This document shows, one piece after another, positions 12,481 through 19,300 of a DNA stretch of 64,000 nt (positions within the stretch are counted from its first letter, which is position 1; every line of letters starts with the position of its first letter). The stretch comes from Perkinsus chesapeaki ATCC PRA-425. Taxonomy: Eukaryota; Protista; Perkinsozoa. The DNA is taken from contig JAAPAO010000104.1 of the NCBI GenBank assembly GCA_013115145.1, positions 1-64,000 of the forward strand, read 5' to 3'. The notes under the pieces are model-generated. The model was not told the DNA's origin. It worked only from the letters and a program-made list of their open reading frames with translations, and searched no databases. The position numbers were made by a program, and so were the translations under genes.

Positions 12481-12530
12481 ACACCCATCAAGCACTGAAA
12501 TTGCCTTCACTGATATTATTGAAAAAATAG

Positions 12531-13863
12531 TTAAAGTTTTCCGGCCAGCGCCATCTTGTACTGGCCGTTCGCCTGACGAACCGCCAAGTCCAACATGATT
12601 TCCTCCGAGCCGCCGGGGATAGCCAGGGCACGCACATCCCTATAGAGCCGCTCCACTACTTCACCAAGGCCACTGCGAGTGTACGCATTGCCTCCGAAGA
12701 TCTGTGATGCCTCGCGTGCACAATACTCGAACATCTGAAACGGCCAAAGATTCTTCAGAGGTTAAAAGTCGCCTTACCTTAGTGCAGTGCACCTTACACA
12801 GTGCCAGCGGCCCGCCCAACATGAAAATTGCTTCCTTGGGCGGCATGGTACAGAGCTGATGCGTAAGGCTCTCCATCCAGCCTTGAGCTCCTTCTATTTG
12901 CCGCGCCATCTCCGCCAGCTTCCACCTTATAACAGGATGCTCTATCAGAGGCTTACCGAATGTCTTGCGCTTCTGAGCGTACTTGAAGGACACGTCATAG
13001 AGCAAGCGGCTGAATCTGACAGCCTGGACCACAAAGCCCCAACGCTCGTGGTTGAAGTTGTACATGATAACCTTGAAGCCTTCGTTCTCTTTGCCCACTA
13101 TATTCTCCACAGGCACCTTCACATTGTTGAACTCAACGAAGGTAGTGCCGCTTGACCAGACGCCTTGGCAATCCATCTGCCTCACTGTAACGCCTGGACC
13201 CTTCGGAATAAGAAGAACCGATATTCCGTTCATCCCATCAGGACCAGTGCGGACTGCGGTTGTGAAGTAGTCAGAGAAAACACCGTTTGTTATCCATTTC
13301 TTTTCACCGTTCACGATGTAGTGCTTGCCGTCCGCCGTCAACTTGGCCGTAGTGCGGATGCTGGCCACGTCGCTGCCAGTGTGGGGCTCTGTAATGGCAA
13401 GAGAGATGAAGTTCTCCCCTCTCAGGCAGGCTGGAACCACCTTATCTCGGATATGCGGTTGACAGAAGTTCATTACGGGCGTGAGGCCAATAGAGTATCC
13501 GACAATCAGACCACCAACAACTCCTCCACTGCCACACCTCGAGAGCTCGTCCAGCAGAATCAGCTCGTGGAAAACGTCATAATTAGCCGGCTTAGGGGCC
13601 ACAGAGGAATCCACAAAGTCAAAACCGCGTTCGCCAACAACACAGGGCAAAAGTCCAGCCTTGTAGAGCTTCTTGTAGACTTCGACGGGAACCTTCTTGG
13701 CCTCCTCCCAATCCTTCACGTTCGGAATTATCTCTGCATCAACAAATCTTCGGCATCTTTCACGCCACGCACGATGACTCTCGTTGTAGTAGGGCGAGTC
13801 GTGATCACCGCGGTACCAACTGGGCTCACCGTAGGGTACCAAGCTGCCGAACGGTGGGGACAT
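12531..13863 (-). CDS. Acyl-CoA dehydrogenase
   Basis: MSPPFGS... start at 13863. Motifs LAITEPHTGSDVA, NGEKKWITNG, FNHER and QIFGGNAY...LYRDVRALAIPGGSEEIM. Single 43-nt intron at 12735-12777. Confidence 0.95.
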
Positions 13864-13943: not shown

Positions 13944-14386
13944 TCAAAATTTGAACCACCCAAACTTCTCTAAAAAAGCTGCACTTTTAACTCTCCCCAC
14001 GCCCCATAACGCCAGAGGCACGTATTCGCTCAGCAGGGGGAGTTCACGGTTGGTCAGCACATGGCCAATTCTAACCCGAAACGGCTCTCCAGTTTTTTGG
14101 TATTTTCTAAATGAATCTACCTTTGAGTCCAAGATTTGCATCTTGAAACATTTAGTCCAACTCTTTTGGTTAAAAAGTTGAATATCGAAGATCATATTTG
14201 ACATATTCGGAATACGCGATATATAGAGTGCTGGCAGCACTGCGCTGCCAGAAAAGCATTAATGCAATTCTGGCCCTGCCACGAGACAACATAGTTAGGA
14301 AAATGCAAGTGGCTCGAGTTGCGCAAGAATTCGATTCCTTTATCAAAGGCCGCTTTTACTTTAAGCTCATCCAATCGGTCCTGCAA
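13944..14386 (-). CDS. Possible hypothetical gene or remnant next to the strand-switch region
   Basis: Two overlapping AT-rich open frames (64 aa and 98 aa). No family recognised. Confidence 0.3.
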
Positions 14387-14495
14387 TTTTGAAGCCCAAG
14401 TACCACTTGAAGAATATCTATTCTGTAAATTCCAGTTCTTGCATTGACCTTAGTCTCTCCGCTTTCTGTTGAGTAATCTGGCATCATCTGAGTTG

Positions 14496-14521
14496 CCCCC
14501 TTTTTTTCTCTTTTCCCCGAG
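14496..14521 (+). promoter_or_regulatory. Polypyrimidine tract + AG just upstream of the first ATG of the plus-strand block (candidate SL trans-splice acceptor)
   Basis: CCCCCTTTTTTTCTCTTTTCCCCGAG ends 17 nt before ATG 14539. No upstream donor or exon is evident. Confidence 0.4.
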
Positions 14522-14538
14522 TTCGACACCCCTTAACC

Positions 14539-16199
14539 ATGCTCGGACTGTCTCGTCGTGCCTTGGGCCCTGCACTCGTTCGTCCGCTCTACCAACGCGG
14601 GCTGATGGCAGCATCTACTACCGCCTTCAGGACTACCGCTCCGACCATGTAGCTACAATCCCGCTCCGACTTTGGTTTCAGGCAGTTCTCTGTGGTAGGT
14701 GGTCCAGCGGCGTGCGAGGCTTCGCGAGCATGCCTCCAGTTAAGCCGAACAACTCGTTGGTGCCTGTCAACGATACGGTGGAGAAGTTCACGCAAAAGGC
14801 AAGTCCTGTAGGATGCCTTTCTCGCATCTTGCCACTGTTTAGGTTTCAACTACGGGACTGTTGCCTGCTTGTAAGTCTAAGATAGCTGAGGTTACTAACA
14901 AAAGCGCTATCTTTGAGGTGAGCACTCGAGGATGTGTCTTGATGTTCGTGGGCGTTATTTCTCCAACACGAATATACGCGATACATTCCCGTCTAATTCT
15001 CTATGACCCATAAATTTGCTTAATTACGTCCTCGGTGTAGATTGCTCCATTCAATTCCCAGTGTAAATTACATTATTACACCGGTCAATTCACGTGAATG
15101 AAGCCAGTGGATAACAGGGAACATTTGGTATTGGAATAGAGTAAAGGTACAAAGTATCATCCTGTTACGTATGCAACGGGCTTGAGATAAGACTCAATCG
15201 TGAAACTGGGTATTGCGTCTCATCGCCGTTTGGGCATCGTCGTAACGTAGAGGTTGGTTGCCATTACAAGGGTTCATTTCAGATATCTGTGGGAGTTGTG
15301 GTGGCACAGTACAAGCAGATATTCCTAAGTCTTATGCGTAACATTTTCCAGTCCTTCAGACCCTTGCTGATCACCGTCATTATGGGTAGTAAATAATTCC
15401 TGCAGCAACTTCGAATAATTTTCTATTTCTACTGCTTGTTATTCCCATTCGTCTGAATGTCATATTTATAACTATCATTATTATCTATCATAATATCCAA
15501 TCTCTTCTTTCTCATTACTCTTATTATTACTCTTCTTGCTATATTTCCGCGCTGAATGGTTTACCATTTCCACCGCTTTGAGACCGCTACTGCCTTTATC
15601 ATTCACCATTATCAGCCCTCTCATTCCCATACGATATTTCATCGCTTGGTCTTTGAGAATTGCCGGGGCTATTGGTGTGTATGATTACGGTGGTTTGGGC
15701 TCCTTGTGTGGTGGTTAGGTAACATGCTCAAGATGGCTGCGTTCTTGATGCAATTCCCGATATCATTCTACTCCATATTCTTTTTTGAAGTCTTCTATGG
15801 CATGGCACAGTTGGCGATCAGCTTCGTATTTGTGTGTTTCTTCCACAACAACATGAGCCTCCAAACGAGGGTAGTATCCTTTCGGGTGTGTTTTAGGTAA
15901 CGTGCTAAAGATGGCCGCATTCTTGCTCCAAATTCCAGTGGGCTTTTACTCCATCTTCATGTTTGAAGTCTTTTACGGCATTTTCCAGCTCGGCCTAAGT
16001 TTCGTATTTGTGTGCTTCTTCCATAACGATGTTAGTATGCAGTCGAGGGTAATAGGGAAAGAGCAAGGACAGGTTGAATTTTCTGGGGAAGTGTCTTGGC
16101 TGTCTGCTGGTGCATTTTGGGTTTTGTTCCTGTCAGGCTCGACAGCAGCTGCTTAGGACGATGCGCCGTAACTTGAGGCGGTTCAAGCATATGATGTAG
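14539..16199 (+). CDS. Nucleus-encoded mitochondrial ATP synthase F0 subunit a-like protein (myzozoan type) with duplicated alternative exons
   Basis: Arg-rich presequence MLGLSRRALGPALVRPLYQR. Exon 15283-15385 (ISVGVVVAQYKQIFLSLMRNIFQSFRPLLITVIM-G) splices in phase to NMLKM...FEVFYGMAQLAISFVF. The E-x6-Q spacing matches the last helix of subunit a, and RPLL...G.vmK...FEVFY resembles the Toxoplasma subunit a as I recall it. Last exon 16137-16199. One internal exon between 14870 and 15283 is unresolved. Confidence 0.75.
15719..15870 (+). other. Alternative exon A of the subunit a-like gene
   Basis: ag|GT AAC ATG CTC AAG ... CAA ACG AGG|gt. 152 nt, phase 1 to phase 0. Encodes (G)NMLKMAAFLMQFPISFYSIFFFEVFYGMAQLAISFVFVCFFHNNMSLQTR. 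Confidence 0.85.
15897..16048 (+). other. Alternative exon B of the subunit a-like gene
   Basis: ag|GT AAC GTG CTA AAG ... CAG TCG AGG|gt. 152 nt, phase 1 to phase 0. Encodes (G)NVLKMAAFLLQIPVGFYSIFMFEVFYGIFQLGLSFVFVCFFHNDVSMQSR. Confidence 0.85.
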
Positions 16200-16341
16200 A
16201 GAAGCGAAGCAAGCGTTTTTCAAGAGGCTGGATATTATTGGTGACGATGTAGAGTTTCGTGTGGGAGTAATGAGGCGTTGTGTTGGTGAAGTTGGTAATA
16301 CGCATGCGAACGGAGGCAATCATGACAAGCTTGAAGCCTCT

Positions 16342-19300
16342 ATGTCGTACGAAATACGGCCTACAGACAGGCCGCTGACGGTCGATGCGTTTGTGGATTT
16401 ACAAAGGGAACTTTTGCCTTTGGAACGCGACGAGGAAATCTCGCAGACAACAGAAGTGTTGCAGACGCGGTCCAATGCGGAGCTACAGGTGACAGTGAGA
16501 TCTCGATGGAAAGAGAGCGAACTTGGTCATTAGGATCGAGGAGTGGTGATACTCAAACTCCTACTGGATTCGGTCTCTACTGGACCTTACGGACGTAATG
16601 CACCACTGCCATCATACTGTGTCGTACTGGCGCCGTGCAGGCCCTCTTTTGACGTTCACGAAGCCATCTGGTCGAGGGGAGCAAAGGCCACTTCTGCCAC
16701 CCAACAGGTCGGACGCAGTTCCTCTCTGAGACCCTCTAGCTAACCCACTTGATGACCTGTCTATTAGGTTCACCTCTGGAGACATAGTAGGTGTCTTCAG
16801 TGTGTCCGGACATCAAGGATTCAGTGGAGAGCCGGAAGTCAGCGGTGTGGTAATACTAACGGTAGGGTAGTTTTAATAGGAATACTAAATATTAGGAATA
16901 GGAATACCTATATTAAAATAGGAATTACTATGAATAAAATACGGAGTTTTCGTAACCTACTGCACATTTATTGGCTTCGGGCAGGCAACATGCTCTCGAG
17001 ACTGGCTGAAAAAGTGCGCTCCCTAGTAATGGTAATGCTTAGTAGATATCAAACGTTAGTGTTGTGTATCATCGATGTAAGAATATCAACAAAGCTTGCC
17101 TCCAATACCGCTCCTCAAGACTGATAGTAGGCACCCTATCTTAAGACTTCCTATACAGGATTATGATATAGTGTACAATAAGATGACAGTGCTCATGGAA
17201 ACACGAACTGAAATGTGAACAGGGGTGGGGTAAGGTATTGGAGCCCGGGAGGCTCAGCCTGCTCGTCTTCTCAATATGACTGTAGTGTAACGAGGCAGCA
17301 GGCTGCTGCCAGCAGCCTTTGCTGTCGCTAGCAGCCGGTTAGGACCTTCTGATCCGGAAGTCCTCGAATTTCCGCAAATCTGAAGCTCCCCAAAAATATT
17401 TTTGAGGCAGAGACGCGTTTTAGGATATGGCTCGTAATTGTCCGAGGGCCTCTGAGTAGCCTTACGTATCTTAGGTCCACTCGGTCGGGCAGACTTCAGT
17501 GGTAGTCGTAGCAGATGACCCGGAACTTGACACTGATAATCTCAAAGTGGGAGGAGGCGCCCCAGCATACTCTTTGGCGCTTATGGGTACTAAGGATGGG
17601 TCTGCGATGGTGCCCGGGATCATTGAAACTCTTCGTTGAGTTGGTTTCGTCGCCATGAGCCTCCAATAGCGTCTATCGTATTGGGGAATTCCGGATGGTA
17701 TAAATACGTCTTTGGGCTGCTCCACCCAGCGGAATGTTGTTTATCTAGCTCAGCTGTAGTACGTCACTGTTAGCTCGTAGGGCTATCTGTTACGAGATCA
17801 CTTGAACATCATCATGCATGATCTTCTCTGTATATTCCTGAGAGAAATGTAACAGAGATGATCTCAGGAAAGCTTCAATGTTCATGAGGGGGCAACCTGT
17901 CTGTCTAGCAATATGCTGTTAATGATTATCTTGAAGCCTGGGCAGCGTGTCACACTTAGCTTAAATGTTTTTGGTGTTCTTTTTGCACTGGTGGCTGATC
18001 AGGTAGTGACGTAACCTACAAGCGGCTCAACAGTGTATTGGACAGACTGGCCAAAAGTGTAATGAGCAGGAGTCCATACCGCTCCTTTCTCTGACACCTA
18101 TTCTTCGCATCATGGTATTCTGGTCAGGTCCACAATCCCATTGTGTCATGCTGCTTCGGTGAGACGTCTATACCCTCGCTGCATCCTCGGGTCCAGGATG
18201 ATATCCCACTGACCTATGGTGCTAATCTGAACGAAGTTCAGCGGCGAGCTGTGAGAGTGTGCTTGGACGCGTCCCCTTTGGCATTGGTCCATGGCCCGCC
18301 TGGGACCGGTAAGACTACTGTATTGGTATCGTATATTCTGGAGTCGATCAAAGTAGCTAGTTGCAGCGCCGGTATTTCAGTTAGTTAGCTACTTCAGATT
18401 CATCAGAAGCTACTCGTTTGTGCACCATCGAATGTAGCCGTCGACAATCTGCTGGAGCGAGTGACATCCGTTGGTGGGATCTCCAATGTGGTGCGCATCG
18501 GCCATCCGGCGAGAGTTGGGCAGGGGCTTGAAAAGTAGGGCACTGCTCTTGCTGAGGATCACTTGCCGTGGGCTTTCCTATTTATTAGCTGGCTTACGGA
18601 TGAACTTGTCAGCGGAAGTTCATGTCACCCGTTTCTATTCTCAGCGACGTAGCCTTCAGCTCATCCAAAATAGTCTGTTTTATCTTCATCTCGACGCTAC
18701 TGAATGTAGACGAATGGCCTCATTGATGAAGATCTAGCCTGTGAATTGCGTACTTTGCGGCCACTCTTTTCCTTTGGGCCGTAGTTCAGCGTTCACAAAA
18801 ATGATGTAAGGAGAGCACGGATGGATCTCCCCGGCCATTGGCCGTTTTCGCACATTTTCCGAAAGAGTGCCTCTTTCTGTGTTGTTCGTTGGTGGTATGC
18901 CGCTTCCCAATTTGAAGGTACACATTGGACGCCAAACTAGCTCGTAGCGATCAGCAGCAGTTGGTTGGGGACATACGGGGCGAAATCGATAAGTGCATGA
19001 AGGAGCGCTTGAAAGCCCGAGAGAAGGGAACTAGACGACGTCTGCAAGGAGAAGTTCGTGAACTACGGAAAGAACTGAAGTATATCTCGCCTGAAGTGTC
19101 CACTGGATTATGGAAATATGGTATGCCATACCGTATTTCCATAATCCAGTATACCGGGTATGCTGCATAGCGAAGATTACCATTACACTGTTCAATTTAT
19201 GCGTGGAGGGCTCAGCCAGTCTCGTAGCAGCCTTCGCGATGCACGTGGATGATCGATACGACTGAATCTACAGGCCGGCTCATGCGAGACTAGCAAATGT

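Follow-up and report, generated by a model that had tools for sequence, protein, structure and literature searches.

In almost all eukaryotes, subunit a of the F-type ATP synthase is encoded by the mitochondrial genome, so that it occurs in a single form and is not subject to splicing. This report concerns a gene in 64,000 nucleotides of Perkinsus chesapeaki ATCC PRA-425 (GenBank assembly GCA_013115145.1, contig JAAPAO010000104.1, positions 1 to 64,000 of the forward strand; the whole stretch is called the window) that appears to encode a nuclear subunit a, and in which the exon for helix H6 is present in two adjacent versions, 5A and 5B. The closest described protein is subunit a of Toxoplasma gondii (structures 6TMG, 6TMJ, 6TMK and 6TML; PMC7785744), which is nuclear-encoded and minimal and keeps only the horizontal helices H5 and H6. 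In that protein H5 carries the essential arginine, R166, and also R159, which is turned to the matrix half-channel, and E201, between H5 and H6, lies at the lumenal half-channel; R166 and E201 were named as functional residues (PMC7785744). The Perkinsus protein resembles it in being nuclear, in its size (about 200-224 residues), in its long N-terminal targeting region and in having the H5-H6 hairpin only, and the two are about 30% identical over 74 residues. An alternative exon or isoform has not been described in T. gondii, whereas in Perkinsus H6 is encoded in two genomic versions.

Exons 2 and 3 of alpha-tropomyosin are a classical mutually exclusive pair. Other pairs of this kind, as surveyed in human (PMC5740500) and as seen in OGDH exons 4a and 4b (PMC7969005), likewise consist of neighbouring homologous exons that match in length and phase. 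Their exclusivity, too, comes from frame incompatibility and from a very short intron, in which the branch and acceptor region lies beside the upstream donor. What differs is the setting: Perkinsus is a single-celled alveolate that trans-splices a spliced leader, and the exons here belong to the proton-channel stator of an F-type ATP synthase.

Three further systems are similar in part. The exclusive exons of coq-2 in helminths and Caenorhabditis elegans also offer a choice between homologous exons in a protein of the mitochondrial inner membrane, and the choice changes the chemistry of the respiratory chain (PMC7434440). Those organisms alternate between oxygen-rich and oxygen-poor habitats, but the protein, the pathway and the organisms, which are animals, are different (PMC7434440). 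In Podospora anserina, subunit c is also a nuclear component of the Fo rotor-stator that exists in two structurally different versions, which regulate energy metabolism (PMC4956034). There the versions are two separate genes for subunit c, whereas in Perkinsus they are alternative exons for subunit a. The alternative oxidase of the oyster Crassostrea virginica, a respiratory protein of the mitochondrial inner membrane, also exists in two forms because a duplicated exon is spliced alternatively (PMC5589949). It is an animal gene for a different enzyme, and the oyster is itself a host of P. marinus.

Full-text searches of the literature for alternative or exclusive splicing in Perkinsus, for exclusive exons or subunit a isoforms of ATP synthase, and for the P. 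marinus accession found nothing relevant, and isoforms are not mentioned in the Perkinsus complexome paper (PMC13623125) or its preprint. Exclusive exons that arise by tandem duplication are well known, and their occurrence on an F-type subunit a is, as far as we could check, undescribed.

The exon pair and its conservation

Exon 5A (15719-15870) and exon 5B (15897-16048) lie on the forward strand. Each is 152 nt long, runs from phase 1 to phase 0, and has AG before it and GT after it. The spacer between them (15871-15896) is 26 nt long, begins with GTAGTA, ends with TTTTAG, and holds both the donor of A and the acceptor of B. The exons are identical at 110 of 152 nucleotides and at 36 of 50 complete codons (37 of 51 with the Gly codon that is split at the junction), and neither contains a stop or an indel in the window sequence. 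Direct comparison therefore bears out the original prediction, which described two 152-nt exons with AG/GT sites, a 26-nt gap, and no stops or indels. The pair is the sole direct-repeat family within 14000-17000 (162 nt, 73%). Differences between A and B fall 13, 3 and 26 times on codon positions 1, 2 and 3, which is a coding pattern and not one expected by chance. An independent DNA run from another sample (X9) gave a contig across 15802-16058 that holds the spacer and B together with the last part of A. Because this contig runs through the spacer, the duplication is real and is not the assembly artefact that the prediction had considered as a way in which it could fail.

The nearest named proteins are Pmar_PMAR002991 from Perkinsus marinus ATCC 50983 (176 of 200 residues identical) and three P. 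olseni models. We compared the exons in four genomic sequences from three species, namely the window, P. marinus ATCC 50983 and two P. olseni assemblies. The pair is intact in P. marinus and in both P. olseni assemblies, with 152 nt in each exon and AG/GT sites, so both exons are indeed present in the related species in which the prediction suggested looking for them. When the eight exon sequences were placed in a maximum-likelihood tree, A and B formed separate clades with 100/100 support each. This indicates that the duplication predates these species and that the copies have not been homogenised.

Both copies are under strong purifying selection. For A, the ratio of nonsynonymous to synonymous substitution rates (dN/dS) between orthologues ranges over 0-0.08, and for B it ranges over 0-0.12; where a pair differs at all, its dS is 0.16-1.2. 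When A is compared with B, the synonymous sites prove to be saturated (proportion of synonymous differences 0.77-1.0), and the proportion of nonsynonymous differences is 0.16-0.18. Variable sites among the four genomes fall on codon positions 1, 2 and 3 in the numbers 3, 1 and 16 for A, and 5, 1 and 16 for B. These values, together with the lack of stops and indels in all four genomes, agree with the earlier claim that both copies are under purifying selection. As the frame of B can be read only if exon 4 is joined to it directly, its preservation is strong evolutionary evidence for an mRNA that contains B, apart from any RNA contig.

The RNA evidence consists of contigs assembled from small public RNA runs, and such contigs show presence, not absence. 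Exon 4 (15283-15385, forward strand), which is constitutive and has RNA joints at both ends, was joined to A across 333 nt in four runs (15385>15719; X1, X2, X6 and X13). It was joined to B, with A skipped, in X7 only (15385>15897; 511 nt, GT..AG). The X7 run assembled the B form alone, at a depth of 19.5, and the other four runs assembled A only, which hints at sample-specific exon use.

The two 5' RNA junctions, the conservation in three species and the selection in the frame joined to exon 4 together support mutually exclusive use. We conclude that the pair is real and conserved across the genus, that its two exons are probably mutually exclusive, and that it is likely to be functional. We consider it very likely that the gene encodes a nuclear, myzozoan-type subunit a whose anciently duplicated exon 5 is used one copy at a time.

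The protein and its two versions of helix H6

The assignment to subunit a, which the original prediction had made from a resemblance, is supported by profile searches. A profile built from both exon peptides was compared with 1.84 billion representative proteins and found 26 homologues of 74-271 residues. Most of these have a long, variable N-terminus followed by a common C-terminal pattern (FE..., HY, R..FQ.FRPLL, G..LK, P..FYS, FEV.YG..Q..SF.F). Two profiles of the homologues, A2 and A3, match the T. gondii 'subunit a' chain (6TMG, chain 6tmg_k) with E=1.7e-7 and 6e-7, and this protein (6TMG, 6TMJ, 6TMK, 6TML) is the only solved one matched below E=0.1. The hidden Markov model alignment pairs R159, R166, E201 and Q208 of T. 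gondii with residues of the window, and it is this match, with the two arginines, the glutamate and the glutamine aligned, that bears out the identity. The family profile was needed to find it, since phmmer of one 50-residue exon peptide against the PDB gave no match.

The aligned residues are divided between the exons. Exon 4 encodes most of H5 and contains LMRNIFQSFRPLL, which holds the two arginines aligned to R159 and R166. The alternative exon begins at a conserved Gly-Asn and codes for roughly the final ten residues of H5, then the turn and H6. Both H5 arginines, the Glu of FEVFYG and the Gln are invariant columns in an alignment of 27 sequences, and in all four genomes both A and B contain the glutamate of FEVFYG and a Q seven positions after it. 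The prediction that the proton-channel helices exist in two forms thus stands for H6, the turn and the end of H5; the part of H5 with the essential arginine does not alternate, because it lies in the constitutive exon 4.

Features of the rest of the protein are in keeping with a minimal mitochondrial subunit. The first 50 residues contain six Arg and no Asp or Glu, so that exon 1 may encode an Arg-rich presequence. In the AlphaFold2 (AF2) model of the P. marinus orthologue, residues 1-80 are disordered and two helices follow at 82-140 and 145-199, with predicted local distance difference test values per block of 61-92, mostly at least 76. Judged from these comparisons, the interpretation of the gene product as a nuclear, myzozoan-type minimal subunit a, with a putative presequence and an H5-H6 hairpin predicted to face the c-ring, holds. 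In the P. marinus complexome, all of the 27 homologues of Toxoplasma subunits except subunit c are reported to migrate together at about 1.9 MDa, a total of 26 (PMC13623125), and the orthologue may be among them.

Twelve amino-acid differences between A and B are fixed across all four genomes. When H6 is plotted as an ideal helix, its invariant Glu, Tyr, Gly, Gln, Ser and two Phe residues lie within 300-40 degrees, and the fixed differences in H6 (exon positions 21, 28, 29, 32 and 33) lie at 140-280 degrees, on the opposite face. This arrangement suggests that the switch probably retunes the packing of H6 against its neighbours, which may be the c-ring, lipid or other subunits of Fo, while the residues that carry protons stay the same. 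A is closer than B to the family consensus in 24 of the 26 homologues, with two ties, and the states of B that are rare or absent in other homologues include Phe at 29, Gly at 32 and Asp at 44. We infer that A is the default, close to the ancestral state, and that B is derived and specialised.

Proposed exclusive splicing and competing explanations

Because each exon is 152 nt long, the other splice combinations shift the frame into an early stop. If both exons are included, a stop follows after three codons of B; if the spacer is retained, the first codon of B is a stop; and if both exons are skipped, the stop comes a few codons into exon 6. At the level of sequence, then, the products with both exons in, with the spacer retained or with both exons out are shown to be non-productive, and the claim that double inclusion breaks the frame was correct.

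The spacer may add a second barrier. Orthologous spacers are 32, 31 and 31 nt long (P. marinus and the two P. olseni assemblies), compared with 26 nt in the window, whereas the introns that flank the pair range over 204-333 and 88-132 nt across the genomes. The short introns of this gene that were verified by RNA are 44 and 50 nt long. An attempt to derive an intron-length distribution from the continuity of open reading frames in the window gave a flat, noisy histogram and was discarded. The branch site for the B acceptor would have to be confined to the spacer or to the last bases of A, beside the A donor.

There is little sign of a mechanism based on RNA pairing. Inverted repeats of 10 nt or more are absent from the window, and there is no conserved competing pairing that would suggest docking and selector elements; the spacer region is no more structured than shuffled sequences (z = +1.3); and no Rfam elements occur in 14000-17000. 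In P. marinus, an element of 13-15 nt in the intron between B and exon 6 (L001, 4251-4265) is complementary to the TTCTTCCAYAACG site that is present in both A and B. Neither the window nor P. olseni conserves this selector-like element.

Several points weigh against our reading. The junction check proposed in the prediction succeeded at the 5' end only: both junctions from exon 4 were seen, and 15870>16137 and 16048>16137 were reached by none of the assembled RNA contigs. As the evidence is contigs, in which reads are not countable, some double inclusion or spacer retention is possible. The exon-B junction is a single 323-nt contig from one run (X7), and the upstream part of that contig differs from the window at six positions. 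These differences could reflect a second allele, a paralogue or a de Bruijn path over a shared 45-mer, and use of B could then be copy-specific. The steric step, in which the spacer is too short for the A donor and the branch and acceptor region of B to function together, is one that we infer. As to identity, Pfam gave no match for the exon pieces or for 17 homologues, and ATP-synt_A (PF00119) was not found. Foldseek of the AF2 model against the PDB returned only insignificant coiled-coil-like matches. The Pfam miss is expected of a divergent, truncated lineage, and the gene is not filed under PF00119; the Foldseek result is uninformative because a bare helical hairpin is not discriminating.

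A second sequence version of the gene is present in the public data. The same RNA runs contain one (14545-15339) that is 6-9% different in exons 1, 2 and 4, and the DNA run from the other sample contains a second haplotype (15562-16058) at about half depth, whose intron 4 departs from the window by about 7%, indels included. Either very deep haplotypes or homeologous copies account for these versions. It is conceivable that one such copy always uses A and another always uses B, so that the two forms are set by genotype. The presence of the second version in both RNA and DNA runs, the variant exon 4 upstream of B in the sole exon-B contig, and the division into one run with B only (X7) and four with A only (X1, X2, X6 and X13) would all fit this explanation. 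We nevertheless consider it unlikely, because an exon that went unused in one copy should in time be lost from it, and the window, the variant haplotype of X9, P. marinus and both P. olseni assemblies all keep both exons and their splice sites under purifying selection. Moreover, the exon-B part of the X7 contig equals the window over 98 nt and does not carry the change of the variant at 15905, which fits a graph path through the shared 45 nt.

Two other explanations concern B itself. B could be a non-functional leftover of the duplication that is spliced in as noise, with only A of importance; A is indeed the consensus-like form, the sole form in the P. marinus reference model, and the form seen in four of five informative runs. 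Although synonymous sites between A and B are saturated, B has no stop or indel in any of the four genomes. B also has an orthologous dN/dS of 0-0.12, has 16 of its 22 variable sites at third positions, and was assembled alone, at depth 19.5, in X7, all of which makes this explanation extremely improbable. Alternatively, both copies could be included in tandem, if A were joined to an AG 14 nt inside B (15911) to give a protein with two H6-like helices. The frame would be open, the resulting intron of 40 nt (40-46 nt) is near the normal size of short introns here, and the automatic P. olseni gene model KAF4717463 (247 aa) has such a structure. Against this, an RNA contig joins exon 4 straight to the full acceptor of B, and the X13 contig runs one base past A with a G, which mismatches the nucleotide A at 15911. 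The first 14 nt of B, which encode N-V-L-K, vary only at synonymous third positions in the four genomes, and the internal AG belongs to a conserved Lys codon that is found in exon A as well. A duplicated H6 was found in none of the 26 homologues. We therefore regard tandem inclusion as very unlikely.

Based on mutually exclusive use of the two exons, we propose a model for how the proteins are made. An ancient tandem duplication of exon 5 would have given rise to 5A and 5B. Exon 4, with the essential arginine of H5, would be spliced either to 5A or, by skipping 5A, to 5B, and either form of exon 5 would then be joined to exon 6 to give two proteins of 200 residues. Exclusivity may be enforced in two steps, by the incompatibility of the frames and by a spacer held at 26-32 nt. 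The cell can thus probably build two stator versions of the ATP synthase motor. More tentatively, we suggest that regulated switching of H6 might yield two functionally different ATP synthases, with B serving a particular stage or condition, such as hypoxic or dormant stages inside the host, or reverse running of the enzyme. If this is true, the move of the gene to the nucleus opened an option that was closed before, and it would give F-type ATP synthases their first case of splice isoforms being switched at the rotor-stator interface.

What the nuclear copy of Perkinsus appears to offer is a conserved choice between two forms of the helix that borders the lumenal proton half-channel and sits against the c-ring. 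Should both be built into the complex, they would be a natural experiment on which surface of H6 tunes proton coupling, contact with the c-ring or assembly of Fo. They would also be a rare case of isoform regulation in the respiratory chain, in a protist parasite of commercial oysters.

Gene structure, gene models and distant homologues

The coding exons are 14539-14648, 14699-14798, 14843-14917, 15283-15385, 5A or 5B, and 16137-16199, all on the forward strand, and the spliced coding sequence has 603 nt and 200 codons for residues with either exon 5. Exon 1 (14493-14648) holds the 5' untranslated region (5'UTR) and then coding sequence from an ATG at 14539, a start codon that we add to the earlier description; RNA contigs cover 14545-14648. 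Exon 2 (14699-14798) follows an RNA joint at 14648>14699, where contigs define a GT-AG intron of 50 nt. The next intron (14799-14842) has 44 nt and GC-AG ends, and is spliced out in RNA contigs of X1, X2, X3 and X5; the joint at 14796>14841 carries three ambiguous letters, and GC..AG is the only placement with a standard acceptor. Exon 3 (14843-14917) is linked to exon 4 by a joint at 14915>15281 in four runs, which becomes GT..AG when the cut is moved by +2, so that RNA contigs give an intron of 365 nt (14917>15283). Exon 6 (16137-16199) is the terminal coding exon. It encodes a basic C-terminal tail, has its stop codon at 16197-16199, and is open in frame from either exon 5. Its acceptor and its length of 63 nt are kept in the four genomes, and the P. 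marinus model P0049 has the same ending.

One contig of RNA run X2 has TTTGGCTCAAG fused ahead of the 5'UTR (window about 14491-14519). We take TTTGGCTCAAG to be the 3' end of the spliced leader of dinoflagellates and perkinsids. Its position suggests that the mRNA is trans-spliced at about 14492/14493, with the probable acceptor AG at 14491-14492, about 47 nt upstream of the ATG.

The gene lies between an acyl-CoA dehydrogenase gene upstream (12522-13863, reverse strand) and a gene for a SMUBP-2-like helicase downstream (18140-18533), and both neighbours are syntenic in P. marinus and P. olseni. Neighbouring coding DNA is only about 77% identical, which sets the Perkinsus species of the window apart from those two, compared with 86-91% for exons 4, 5A and 5B.

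The P. olseni models (L005, 2501-3967; L006, 3501-4310) look wrong: KAF4717463 fuses A to the internal AG of B, KAF4657163 (150 aa) runs from exon 4 into the intron, and KAF4735950 is partial. Because of these errors, and because the P. marinus reference contains A only, proteomics and the building of cryo-electron microscopy models would miss B unless it were added. The region also lacks internal Lys and Arg over 46 residues, so that tryptic sites are missing there.

A protein homologue search with the 93-residue open frame around exon B gave zero candidates, and exact-pattern scans of JGI metagenome contigs for the junction of exon 5 with exon 6 and for the core of exon B gave no hits in either case. 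Distant orthologues do occur on other metagenome contigs (L002, L003 and L004), where they are intronless, encode 130-165 residues and have one copy of the region. These orthologues may belong to perkinsid-like alveolates that are uncultured and have streamlined genomes. Their contigs are very compact, with intergenic gaps of 40-100 nt, and an acylphosphatase gene downstream and a TBCA gene upstream recur among them.

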